64,000 nucleotides of DNA from Pocillopora damicornis (taxonomy: Eukaryota): positions 62,001 through 126,000 of the forward strand of contig NW_020845843.1 of NCBI RefSeq assembly GCF_003704095.1. The letters are read 5' to 3'. Below, one piece after another: positions 18,613 to 24,619 of the stretch. Position 1 is the stretch's first letter; each line of letters begins with the position of its first letter. The position numbers and the translations under genes were made by a program. The notes below the pieces were generated by a model. That model was given only the letters and a program-made list of their open reading frames with translations. It did not search any database and had not been told where the DNA came from.

Positions 18613-20114
18613 TCAAGCGTTTCCAGACTTGATGGCCTCCAACAGAACATAGTGAATAAAAGCATATTGTTCCTGTACGTATACCATGGCATTTCTATCA
18701 CGTCGCAGTGACATAACGTATCCAGATACATCGACTGATTTCTCGGCAGCAAGACGCTGTAACATGGCATGTATTGCTATAAAAGTACCAGTCCTTCCCA
18801 CCCCAGCACTGCAATGAACAACCTGAGGAAGCAGACGCCAAAACTGGTAAAGGGCTACATCACATCTTGTTAAATGTTACAATTTTATCCCTATCTTTAT
18901 AAATTCTTGTTCCCTTTTTAATTCATTCTTACCCCTCTGGAGTTTGTCTACCCTTGCCAGGTATTACTTACAGTTTTCCTTCGAAGACCAACGACCCGAA
19001 TAAAAGTAAAAGCAACAAATCAGTTTAAGTGAGTGGTTCCTTGAACAATGAAACAAAACACTTTCTTCCCACTTAAACCAATTATTCCGAGCGTGAAAGG
19101 ATGACTGGCCAGTAAGCATGTCCTCATTATTTGCCTTGCACGTTGCTCCACCCCGAGTTGGGAAGAGGTTTGCTGCCCGCCCCTGCCGAAGAGCCGTCCC
19201 CACAGAAGAACCGCCCCTGCCGAAGAACCGCCCCTGCCGAAGTGTTAATAATGAGCGCCTGCTCGTAGGCTAGAAAGGAACCTATCCCAGTCGTCAATTA
19301 AATAATCACTCGGCGGAAACACGGCTGAAAAACAACTTGCGCTATTTGTCTGAAGTCTGTTTAGTTTGCAGAATGCTTGTGTCTACAAGTGCCTGGATTA
19401 CATTAACATAGTGGAGAGTACAGCATGGATTGTTTGCAGTCCGAAAGAGCCGCATTTGCTCTGATTAGTATCTTCGAAAAAATCGCTTCGTATTCTCAAT
19501 CTTCATCCTCTACAACACTCACCTGAACTATCCTTTATATCTGAACAACAACATTTCTCAACTTTAGGTAGGTTCACACAGAACCCGAAGCTAAGTTCTA
19601 TCAGTATAAATAGCAGGATTTTCTATTGGGTTGGCTAATATCAAAATAGTCCCAGCGGCTGACCAGAGCCAAGGAAATTATCTTCGAAGAGCTTAAAGTA
19701 AAAGCAAGCATTTTGTTTGTAGCGCGGAAAAAAGTGGGTGAGAAGTCACCATAGCTTTGCTCCTGATCAGTTATTCGGGTAGAAGTTGCTGGACCAATGG
19801 GAAGCAAATGAAAACCAAACAAGCCCTTGGATACTTTTCGACCCGAATAAAAATCGGTCTATAAGGAAACTTGACCATGCACTATTAATATATTTGTTGT
19901 TAAAGGTGTGATTCCTTTTCCCTTTCTTATGTATGTATCGCTTTTGTTTTACTGTCTGAAAAAATGTAATTTAGCCTAAAGGGCATCTAATTAGTTTGCT
20001 ATATTATGCCCTTCTCCATTTTCTTTATCTTATTGTAATTATTCTCTTTATAACTCTTCTCTATATCTTAATTAAAAAACGAAAGCTATACATTGCAAGT
20101 AATCAAGAAACGGA

Positions 20115-20158
<44 letters not shown>

Positions 20159-23100: not shown

Positions 23101-24619
23101 AGGACAATGATTAGGTATGTTCTGATGAGTACACATTGCTTTCATGGTACGTAATGAAATGTAAGTTGTTTGGCGTGTACGTTGTGAATTAGGGAGCGGA
23201 AAAAACACGTTTTAACTTAAAAGTTTCAATGCCTACCTTTAATACCCCCCATAACTCTCGACCTTAATCGACGAGGCTCTCACGATGGCCACAAACCATT
23301 ACACTAATCAAATGAGCCCAAAATGTATGGTTAATGTCACTCTTTGTGCACAGCCCCTTGATCCATGACATCATTTACAAGAAAACAACGCCCAAACGCT
23401 GTGATTGGTTTAGGATATTCAAATGCTATGATATGATTGGTTCGAGATACATACCCTAATGCCGCGATCTGATTGGTGCGAGCAACATACCACTCTATAA
23501 GCTAACACAGTTATTTTTTTATGAAAAAAAATGACTCAATAAAAGGTTGCGAATTGCAGTATTGATGAAATTTTTCACAGATCACTTTGATCAAGCCCGA
23601 TTCGGCTCTTGCAAAGTACTGCAAATATAAGAAATATACTCGCTCTGATGAAGGGCGAACGCTCGAAACGTCAGCTATGAAACTCTATTACTGACATCAC
23701 CAGGCCTCAAGTCCATAAGGTTGTCTGCCCTTTAACCAATCAAAAATCATCCTCCACTCAGTCATCAGAACTTTCCCGCGCTTTGAGCAGATTATCTTCA
23801 TAGTGCACTTACTGTCCTCACTGGCTCATGTTATCATGATGGTTTTGGCTAATTGATCGAAAGAGTCCTAACCTAAAGTCAATACCGATACAATAAAACT
23901 TACCGCGAGCTCTTTGACCTCGCTCATGAAGTTTATCTGTTAGAGTCCTTGTGCGAGCCGACTCTTCATGGCTAATATTAGCAGTGCTTTCTAGCTGACC
24001 ATAGAATAAAATCCCAGCTCCAAAGACCGTAACTACAAGGAGCAGTATTACAATCAATACCATGCTTGTTGTCATGCGATCCTTTTGGGTTGAAAATTCC
24101 ATAGCTCCCTCACACTCATAGACACCATCATTGTCGAACGGACGCTTTGCTTCAACTTCAGGCTTTCCAATAAAATCTTCTATCATGAGAACAAAATAAA
24201 AGAAAAAGGTGTATAGCCTGTGTGTTTGAATAGCAATCCAACGAAAAAATTCAACTTTTAACAAATTCATTTCATTGAATAATCTGTTAACTGTGGTAAG
24301 CCCGTTTTTTTCCGTAACCATCTGGTTAAACTTTTACAATAGTATTTAAATGAATCAATATGATGAAACCCAGCTCCTCCCAGCTAAGTTGAAAAGGATT
24401 GCAATATGTGAGTGACATTAAGGTTTTTCTGGATGTTTACTATGTGCACTAAAAATTTAAAGTTTTCCATGAGCCTTTGAAAAGAATTTTACTTGAAACT
24501 GTACACTTACCGTCTGTACGCCTCCTTCTGGCATCTGTATCCCTTGAAAAGTACTTTCCATCTCTGACAGGATTTGTTGTTTTTTGTTCCTTTTGGTTTC
24601 CAAATTTAACTTCTTCCAT
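18613..24619 (-). CDS. Single-pass membrane protein with one LAR/PTPRF-type tyrosine phosphatase (D1) domain, ~423 aa
   Basis: Minus-strand exons 24619-24511, 24179-23904, 21304-20916, 20677-20390, 18822-18613 total 1272 nt with compatible phases (1,1,0,0). TM segment [24 protein letters not shown] motifs [50 protein letters not shown]. The PTP domain is certain; joining the two N-terminal exons to it is inferred from phase. Confidence 0.8.
20116..20207. repeat. (TA)n microsatellite next to a gap
   Basis: Visible directly. Confidence 0.95.
20224..20353. other. Assembly gap (N run) in the last PTP intron
   Basis: N run. Confidence 1.
22201..22312. mobile_element. Short hairpin MITE with ~40-bp TIRs and a 9-bp target-site duplication
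   Basis: TTGTCTCCTTCGCAGCCGTT...CTCGTCACACAAC pairs with GTTGCGTAACGAG...AACGGTTGCGAAAGAGACAA. Flanked by CGCTTATTG (22192-22200) and CGCTTACTG (22313-22321). Confidence 0.8.
22648..22982 (+). mobile_element. Palindromic tRNA-Thr-derived SINE-like element with a 12-bp TSD
   Basis: Inverted arms ~22651-22714 and ~22753-22816. tRNA-like segment 22877-22949 with box A TAACTCAGTTGG, box B GGTTCAAATCCC and a TGT anticodon loop. AAAATGCAGGTT occurs at 22636-22647 and 22983-22994. Confidence 0.75.
23642..23675 (+). ncRNA. Minimal type I hammerhead ribozyme motif (family B, intact core)
   Basis: GCU-CUGAUGA-A-GGGC-GAAC-GCUC-GAAAC-GUC/AGC: stem I GCU:AGC, stem II GGGC:GCUC, GUC cleavage triplet. Confidence 0.7.

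Follow-up and report, generated by a model that had tools for sequence, protein, structure and literature searches.

A 64,000-nucleotide stretch of the Pocillopora damicornis genome (contig NW_020845843.1, positions 62,001 to 126,000; we call this whole stretch the window, and all positions without a contig name refer to it) contains a small minus-strand gene for a membrane-anchored protein tyrosine phosphatase (PTP), which, judged by homology, is a partial duplicate of a coral LAR-like receptor PTP (RPTP) gene, truncated at both ends. The gene itself is genuine, spliced and expressed, and we are very confident of this gene model and of the origin by partial duplication, held jointly. The duplicate has kept the transmembrane (TM) segment of its parent, here represented by the paralogue on contig C1863, and the first (D1) of the parent's two PTP domains, and a comparison of the flanking residues marks that TM segment as abnormal for a receptor PTP. 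In our favoured explanation the site of action of D1 is cytosolic, while insertion of the protein into the membrane may be inefficient or mixed, and we put the probability of the cytosolic site, and of that alone, at roughly 45%; the chief rival places D1 on the other side of the membrane. In effect, nature may have run a topology experiment here, in which the signal peptide of a receptor PTP disappeared, the anchor-flanking charges then switched sign, and selection on the catalytic domain persisted throughout.

The coding part of the gene comprises five exons (18613-24619) with GT-AG borders and compatible phases, as an earlier, sequence-only reading of this stretch had already noticed. Together they give an open reading frame (ORF) of 1272 nt, or 423 amino acids, and the spliced translation is a 100% match to the annotated P. 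damicornis protein XP_027047254.1 (P0154). Logan RNA contigs from four runs, belonging to four different studies and aligned over 18745-24744, carry the joints 18822|20390 and 20677|20916 in four runs each and 21304|23904 and 24179|24511 in three runs each. The latter two are exactly the junctions that the sequence-only reading had called, and the transcripts spanning 21304|23904 settle the check that it had proposed, namely whether the TM exon is truly joined to the PTP exons. The features on which the argument depends are these, in the order in which they are transcribed:

Exon 0, 26315-26521, minus strand: non-coding 5' untranslated region (UTR), with a GT donor after 26315; the 5' end is approximate and lies at least that far upstream.
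In-frame TAA, 24629-24631, minus strand: read directly, 12 nt upstream of the ATG; closes the frame used by exon 2.
Exon 1, 24511-24712, minus strand: 5' UTR (24712-24620) and codons 1-36 from the ATG at 24619; acceptor ttttcag at 24713; RNA joint 24179|24511.
Polybasic RRRR (residues 31-34), 24518-24529, minus strand: homologous, in our alignments, to the KRKRR convertase-type site in the membrane-proximal ectodomain of the parent.
Exon 2, 23904-24179, minus strand: stub, TM segment and start of the juxtamembrane region; RNA joints on both sides; paralogous exon at C1863:68837-68523.
Hydrophobic segment (residues 72-97), 23998-24075, minus strand: core at residues 77-95, mean Kyte-Doolittle value 3.13; AlphaFold2 helix at residues 70-102.
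Exon 3, 20916-21304, minus strand: juxtamembrane region and first third of the PTP domain, including the KNRY loop; Pfam match and RNA joints.
Exon 4, 20390-20677, minus strand: middle of the PTP domain, including the WPD loop (W324-P-D); Pfam match and RNA joints.
Assembly gap (run of N), 20224-20353, no strand: non-coding, within intron 4; bridged by RNA joint 18822|20390 in four runs.
Exon 5, coding part, 18613-18822, minus strand: P-loop with the catalytic Cys358 (18813-18811), Q-loop and stop codon.
Tyr402 codon, 18679-18681, minus strand: replaces the first Q-loop Gln (equivalent to PTP1B Gln262), by ungapped alignment to PTPRS D1.

An assembly gap so close to the catalytic exon deserves a word of its own. 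Where exons 4 and 5 are joined the Pfam profile is unbroken at 172|173, and the RNA joint 18822|20390 reads straight through the P-loop (GPM|VVHCSAG), so that the gap harbours no coding sequence. A (TA)n/(TATG)n simple repeat at 20107-20223 adjoins the run of N, reads appear to have been cut there, and the repeat probably explains why the assembly is interrupted at all.

At the 5' end, the RNA contigs of three runs (X1, X8 and X11) carry an extra piece of at most 200 nt that departs from the reference near 24719. The first 30 nt of this piece have a unique placement at 26322-26351, and these alone place exon 0 directly, its remaining extent being taken from the length of the RNA contigs. The minus-strand donor at this site reads TTTTGAG|gtaacc and the genome before exon 1 reads tttttcag|TG; the simplest reading is a GT-AG intron (26314-24713) that joins a non-coding exon 0 to an exon 1 starting at 24712, with the aligner having run seven similar letters over the splice junction. 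Because exon 1 is contiguous, and because the TAA closes the frame used by exon 2, no upstream exon can add a signal peptide. That stop codon, at 24631-24629, had been pointed out in the sequence-only reading, as had the lack of a signal peptide and of an Ig/FN3 ectodomain, and on all three counts it was right: the ORF opens behind an in-frame stop, exon 0 is non-coding, and only a frame-broken relic of an FN3 tail is left in exon 1. The orthologue P0151 (described below) has an in-frame TAG of its own in its 5' UTR. The 5' UTR of the P. damicornis gene amounts to about 300 nt and contains seven upstream ATGs, including the weak-context ATG at 26355, in exon 0, of a spliced minus-strand upstream ORF of 116 codons that runs to a stop at 24072, in exon 2. 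This upstream ORF runs across the main start in a different frame, which is in part the old FN3-tail frame, and its TGA overlaps the Met72 codon as ATGA. On the opposite strand, intron 0 contains an ORF of 148 amino acids (25277-25723, plus strand), broken by a run of N at about 25308-25352, which looks like a fragment of a mobile-element protein.

Where did such a gene come from? The genome (234.35 Mb) has two paralogues with both D1 and the second PTP domain (D2), on contigs C1863 and C3848, and the first of these provides the comparison of particular interest. Exon 1 finds its homologue at C1863:70319-70090, its coding part (24606-24509) being about 69% identical in DNA and the donor phase the same, while at the acceptor end the resemblance was judged by eye. 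Exon 2 finds its own at C1863:68837-68523 (E = 8e-9 within the genome), again with the same donor phase, and the two exons align codon for codon across stub, TM segment and juxtamembrane region. In the parent, the homologue of exon 1 is an internal coding exon, consisting of an FN3-like tail, a linker and the KRKRR site. The 5' part of our exon 1 (24712-24620) is an out-of-frame relic of the parent's FN3-tail coding sequence that has become UTR, and the ATG sits inside formerly coding sequence. By this comparison, the signal peptide and ectodomain were lost by 5' truncation, and a new non-coding first exon was gained; contig C1863 ends at 70444, 125 nt upstream of the exon 1 homologue, and the parent is seen only from there on. 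At the other end, D1 is 79% identical to that of the C1863 paralogue, and a stop follows two codons after EAIKSG, where the parent instead continues into its D1-D2 linker. The sequence after this stop (18540-18612, minus strand) can still be aligned to the parent's linker coding sequence, and a long (AAT)n microsatellite comes next; the alignment thus indicates that D2 was lost via a premature stop in the D1-D2 linker exon. The sequence-only reading had instead suggested an exon-shuffled chimera with a foreign anchor, an idea that we now reject: exons 1 and 2 have their homologues, with matching phases, in the parent itself, namely in its last ectodomain exon and its TM exon. The gene is also a clean example of a partial duplicate that would have turned into a smaller new gene by gaining a 5' exon, starting at an internal ATG and ending at a premature stop.

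The domain that survived is a complete one. PF00102 is matched at profile positions 1-72 by exon 3, 74-172 by exon 4 and 173-234 by exon 5 (E from 1e-20 to 1e-29; profile length 234), and the best sequence matches in the PDB are the D1 domains of LAR (PTPRF) and PTPRS, with E = 2e-75 for the whole chain. Together with its position in the D1 tree, among the coral D1+D2 paralogues, this bears out the earlier identification of a single LAR-type D1; neither a second PTP domain nor any other PTP-like sequence was found anywhere in the 64-kb window. AlphaFold2 predicts the PTP fold for residues 143-420 with a pLDDT of about 90-97, and gives low confidence to residues 1-70 and 101-138, the N-terminal domain being predicted to be disordered. 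The catalytic motifs, comprising the P-loop HCX5R(S/T) with Cys358, W324-P-D and K188-N-R-Y, are all intact, and are invariant in our alignment A2. The Q-loop is the place where the domain deviates. Position 402 is Tyr in P. damicornis, P. verrucosa and P. meandrina, and is Gln in orthologue P0151, in the C1863 and C3848 paralogues and in PTPRS; the second Q-loop Gln (Q406) is retained. The first Q-loop Gln positions the hydrolytic water, and mutants of Gln262 in PTP1B provide a basis for expecting slower hydrolysis of the cysteinyl-phosphate. By analogy, the change to Tyr402 in Pocillopora probably slows phospho-enzyme hydrolysis, and it may mean either that the catalytic mechanism shifted in this lineage or that the enzyme is on its way to becoming a pseudo-phosphatase.

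Relatives of the gene are few. P. verrucosa and P. meandrina have 423-residue versions with five differences each, and a more distant orthologue, P0151, comes from a cDNA-like Logan contig (run SRR13196831); it is 79% identical, again 423 residues long, and starts and stops at the same positions. Searches with the N-terminal 140 residues and with the whole protein found no further protein of this architecture, and the gene is, as far as the databases show, restricted to Pocillopora and one related taxon. In all four taxa the ORF and every splice site are intact, so that the disrupted orthologues that would have undermined the sequence-only reading did not materialise.

Comparison with P0151 also reveals very unequal constraint along the protein. 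The ratio of non-synonymous to synonymous substitution rates (dN/dS) is 0.20 for D1 (53 non-synonymous and 60 synonymous differences) and rises to 0.49 in the juxtamembrane region, 0.84 in the N-terminus and 0.92 in the TM segment, where nearly all replacements exchange one hydrophobic residue for another. On these figures D1 is under purifying selection. The synonymous divergence (dS) is about 0.94 to the parent and about 0.37 to P0151. In the D1 tree, the gene and P0151 group together (support 99/97) as sister to C1863 (80/66), and the three coral copies form a clade (95/95). Since the duplication, 0.16 changes per site have accumulated in this lineage as against 0.089 in the parent, which makes it some 1.8 times faster, and evenly so over the stem and later branches; no burst of change is seen on the stem branch of this tree. 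Recent gene conversion from the parent might also have kept the dN/dS of D1 low, and is ruled out by the same tree, given the clade of the gene with P0151 and its stem of 0.068. A plain pseudogene is unlikely, with the ORFs intact in four taxa and a D1 dN/dS of 0.20. The conservation of RRRRTDEDF and of the flanks between the two orthologues is rejected as evidence of constraint, on our estimate that, at a background identity of 68%, chance alone should produce a run of ten identical residues somewhere in the region.

The gene lies within a tandem array of ammonium-transporter (Amt) genes on the plus strand (at about 12487-17585, 32341-34506, 45794-49232 and from 55093 onward), and no other minus-strand gene was found between the first two copies. 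This setting, recognised in the sequence-only reading, is kept in the chromosome-level assembly of P. verrucosa, where two Amt genes on the opposite strand flank the gene, one 4.3 kb upstream and the other 1 kb away. Because that upstream Amt gene is on the other strand and only 4.3 kb off, an Ig/FN3 ectodomain upstream is unlikely in P. verrucosa. Papers on the coral skeleton proteome and on spatial expression mention receptor PTPs, none of which can be attributed to this gene. Intron 2, for its part, contains a tRNA-Thr(TGT) called by ARAGORN at 22877-22950 (plus strand), perhaps a genuine tRNA gene and perhaps a repeat of tRNA origin. In each of the four runs the RNA contigs are 10-100 times deeper over 22545-22944 than over the adjoining intron sequence, and next to the call stands an inverted repeat whose 38-bp arms, at about 22790-22753 and 22713-22676, match perfectly.

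We now come to the membrane anchor, on which the topology of the protein turns. Residues 72-97 are the sole strongly hydrophobic stretch of the 423-residue protein, whose N-terminus is hydrophilic, and because the signal peptide is absent, only the TM segment and its flanks can serve as a topogenic signal. The sequence-only reading had seen a type II anchor here, and part of that view stands, in that the flanks do resemble those of a type II signal-anchor; the anchor is nevertheless not a foreign one, for the homology and shared splice phases of exons 1 and 2 with those of C1863 identify it as the ancestral type I TM segment with mutated flanks. In the parent the flanks read KDH-TM-YRRRQSSPR. 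Relative to these, the point substitutions after the TM segment are R to G, R to Q, R to L and Q to E (RRRQ to GQLE) and R to N, and those before it are E to S and H to R; orthologue P0151 shares the altered state and has one further Arg on the N-terminal side. As had been reported, K69 and R71 precede the segment, and three Glu and no Lys or Arg are found in the 14 residues that follow (residues 98-111), the first basic residue being R112. The two sequons that had been reported, N-I-S at residue 104 and N-G-T at residue 309, are likewise there, and it is their use as support for a lumenal domain that fails. N-G-T is H-G-T in P. verrucosa and P0151 is without any sequon; oligosaccharyltransferase, as Nilsson and von Heijne reportedly found in 1993, needs about 12-14 residues from the TM end, so that N104, at 7-8 residues, is too near the membrane for use. 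We have therefore rejected the sequons as evidence for a lumenal domain. Nor has the protein gained any Cys pair relative to the parent that would suggest adaptation by disulfides; one surface Cys of the parent's D1 (VPSCP) has been lost in this lineage, and Pocillopora has gained one Cys in the N-terminus.

How, then, might such a protein work? What the duplicate retains of the parent is the last ectodomain exon, now translated from an internal ATG and still with its polybasic convertase-type site, along with the TM exon, the juxtamembrane region and D1. With a cytosolic D1, its product would be a ligand-independent, membrane-tethered, D1-only tyrosine phosphatase acting on cytosolic phosphotyrosine, and might be seen as the equivalent, in the form of a separate gene, of the LAR P-subunit or of truncated isoforms of RPTPs such as PTPROt. 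The basic stop-transfer cluster would have been lost under relaxed constraint on stub, TM segment and juxtamembrane region (dN/dS 0.5-0.9), and the near-neutral evolution of the N-terminus, TM segment and flanks fits such a relaxation. Loss of the cluster would probably make insertion inefficient or mixed in orientation, and a minority of chains with an exoplasmic N-terminus (N-exo) could suffice for cytosolic function. If the Met72 start were used, the product would have almost no N-terminal tail, which is the set-up that favoured N-exo insertion in the experiments on the H1 subunit of ASGPR. Precedent exists in PTPROt, a truncated RPTP without signal peptide whose catalytic domain is cytosolic (PMC8645932), and in a rat liver LAR isoform, transcribed from a promoter in intron 11, to which the same description applies (PMC2674045).

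A good deal weighs against the cytosolic placement. Some 71-76 hydrophilic residues precede the TM segment, and the first 71 carry 15 K/R and 17 D/E. Two to three K/R stand just before the segment (two in a 10-residue window), and the number in the first 10 residues after it is zero in this gene and in P0151; the parent has four, and all 155 of the 155 other RPTP-like proteins with a clear TM segment have between one and seven, with a mode of five. The charge difference between C- and N-terminal flanks in 15-residue windows is +5 for the parent, 0 to -3 for the P. damicornis gene and -3 to -5 for P0151, its sign in Pocillopora depending on where the TM boundaries are drawn (part of the counting was done by hand with a 19-residue core). 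In the absence of a signal peptide, the default prediction of the standard rules from such charges would be a cytosolic N-terminus and a translocated D1. ASGPR H1, moreover, inserts only as a type II protein, even when its core consists of 25 leucines, provided that the N-terminal domain of 40 residues is there (PMC2139883). Finally, if a cytosolic D1 were required, the loss of four Arg by separate point substitutions should be selected against.

These same observations are the foundation of the chief rival, an inverted, type II protein, in which the signal peptide was lost, the TM segment became a signal-anchor via point substitutions, and D1 came to lie in the lumen of the endoplasmic reticulum or secretory pathway, or at the cell surface, where it would act on, or bind, phosphotyrosine made by secretory-pathway kinases. 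Apart from the chimera, this is what the sequence-only reading had proposed. Topology and role taken jointly, we regard this as a real though tentative possibility. The flank charges are an outlier among RPTPs (none of the 155 shares the zero) and opposite to those of the parent, through substitutions that can be followed codon for codon, and P0151 shares them with one more Arg on the N-terminal side; the anchor also follows a long N-terminal domain that is rich in charges and, by prediction, disordered. Experiment provides a benchmark for such flanks in ASGPR H1, with a charge difference of -3 and 19 apolar residues followed by polar residues and two Glu (Wahlberg and Spiess, PMC2139883). A human signal-anchor census of 2026 finds a strong positive bias before anchors that have a cytosolic N-terminus and a long translocated domain, and also that insertase-mediated N-exo insertion favours tails shorter than 50 amino acids (bioRxiv 10.64898/2026.04.18.719382). 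The selection on D1 shows that it is used wherever it is located, a surface Cys has gone, as mentioned, and the genome has, by fold match, at least four loci for possible secretory kinases (see below). On the other side, the catalytic thiolate is oxidation-sensitive and would face an oxidising compartment; no sequon is conserved, with none in the 423 residues of P0151, no disulfide pair has been gained, and D1 passed through no burst of change on its stem branch. The flank composition is also within reach of relaxed drift, which, starting from a cluster of Arg, can only lower the charge (we estimate a probability of about 0.03-0.13 for the neutral loss of four Arg), and the N-terminus and TM segment are near-neutral in their evolution. 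Every classical PTP domain of which we are aware works in the cytosol, and to our knowledge none has been placed on the exoplasmic side; we know of no phosphatase that acts on phosphotyrosine in the secretory lumen or at the cell surface, even though a tyrosine kinase of the secretory pathway is known.

Two further explanations were weighed. It is conceivable, though we consider it unlikely, that the gene is an expressed but decaying relic, a partial duplicate on its way to being lost, whose transcript and ORF persist without a role at the protein level. Truncation at both ends would fit this well enough, as would a 5' UTR burdened with seven upstream ATGs and a long overlapping upstream ORF, the near-neutral N-terminus and TM segment, the change of a catalytic Gln to Tyr in Pocillopora and the narrow taxonomic range. 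Decay is harder to square with an ORF and splice sites that have stayed intact in four taxa despite a dS of about 0.94 to the parent and about 0.37 between orthologues, with the low dN/dS of D1 (53 non-synonymous against 60 synonymous differences), and with a conserved stop position, length of 423 residues and TM hydrophobicity. That the gene model is simply incomplete, with a signal peptide and ectodomain encoded by upstream exons or D2 by downstream ones, strikes us as highly improbable. Gaps are close by (20224-20353 and about 25308-25352), and the parent does have such exons; the RNA contigs, however, extend beyond exon 1 into exon 0, which is non-coding, the one frame that fits exon 2 is shut by the TAA at 24631-24629, no other joint into exon 2 occurs among the joints listed, and the P. 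verrucosa gene is bracketed by opposite-strand Amt genes within 1-4.3 kb. Missing 5' coding exons are ruled out by the RNA contigs, exon 0 and the TAA. As for a downstream D2, there is none in the window, where no further PTP-like sequence was found, and the stop, shared with the orthologue's cDNA contig, lies inside the relic of the linker exon.

Whichever way D1 faces, the consequences would be worth having. Were it exoplasmic, this would be the first classical phosphotyrosine phosphatase, or phosphotyrosine binder, on that side of the membrane, and would open up the turnover of extracellular phosphotyrosine. Were it cytosolic, as we favour, the protein would be a clear case, provided by nature, of a signal-anchor that departs from the charge rules, and as such useful for topology research.

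It is instructive, in closing, to set the gene beside systems that are better understood. Its nearest kin are the LAR-type R2A receptor PTPs (PTPRF, PTPRS, PTPRD and the C1863 paralogue), to which D1 is most similar, the TM exon, juxtamembrane region and polybasic site being homologous to those of C1863; it differs from them in having no signal peptide, no Ig/FN3 ectodomain, no D2 and no basic cluster after the TM segment, and, in Pocillopora, in the Tyr of the Q-loop. On the side of secretory signalling, VLK/PKDCC is a tyrosine kinase of the secretory pathway that could supply substrates to a lumenal or ecto-PTP, although, as a kinase, it is unrelated to this gene. In this genome PF12260, which we take to be the FAM69/DIPK secretory-kinase fold, in a family that presumably includes PKDCC, is matched at no fewer than four loci: L012 (C2487:74051-74512), L013 (C3396:553959-554627), L014 and C138:416523-416804. 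A PDB search with one locus of this fold (a single-exon ORF of 451 amino acids) returned no relative. ASGPR H1 offers a likeness of layout, with an uncleaved internal anchor after a hydrophilic N-terminal domain, basic residues before it, polar and then acidic ones after it, and a charge difference of about -3; there is no homology, and the C-terminal domain of H1 is a glycosylated, disulfide-bonded exoplasmic lectin, whereas D1 is without such adaptation. Our gene has several features by which type II proteins are usually told, namely no cleavable signal, a single uncleaved hydrophobic segment within the customary 19-27 residues and a more positive N-terminal flank (the sign of the difference being boundary-dependent in Pocillopora). 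PTPROt (also PTP-oc) and the rat liver LAR isoform come closest in plan, likewise consisting of a TM segment and a PTP domain without a signal peptide, behind a new or internal 5' exon (PMC8645932; PMC2674045). They are, however, isoforms of the parent genes with native TM flanks, while ours is a separate duplicate with altered ones. PTPROt, with only eight residues before its TM segment, typifies the type III, N-exo kind of protein, in which a short tail is combined with a retained basic cluster; the coral protein has neither, and presents instead a charged N-terminus of 71 residues with 15 K/R.

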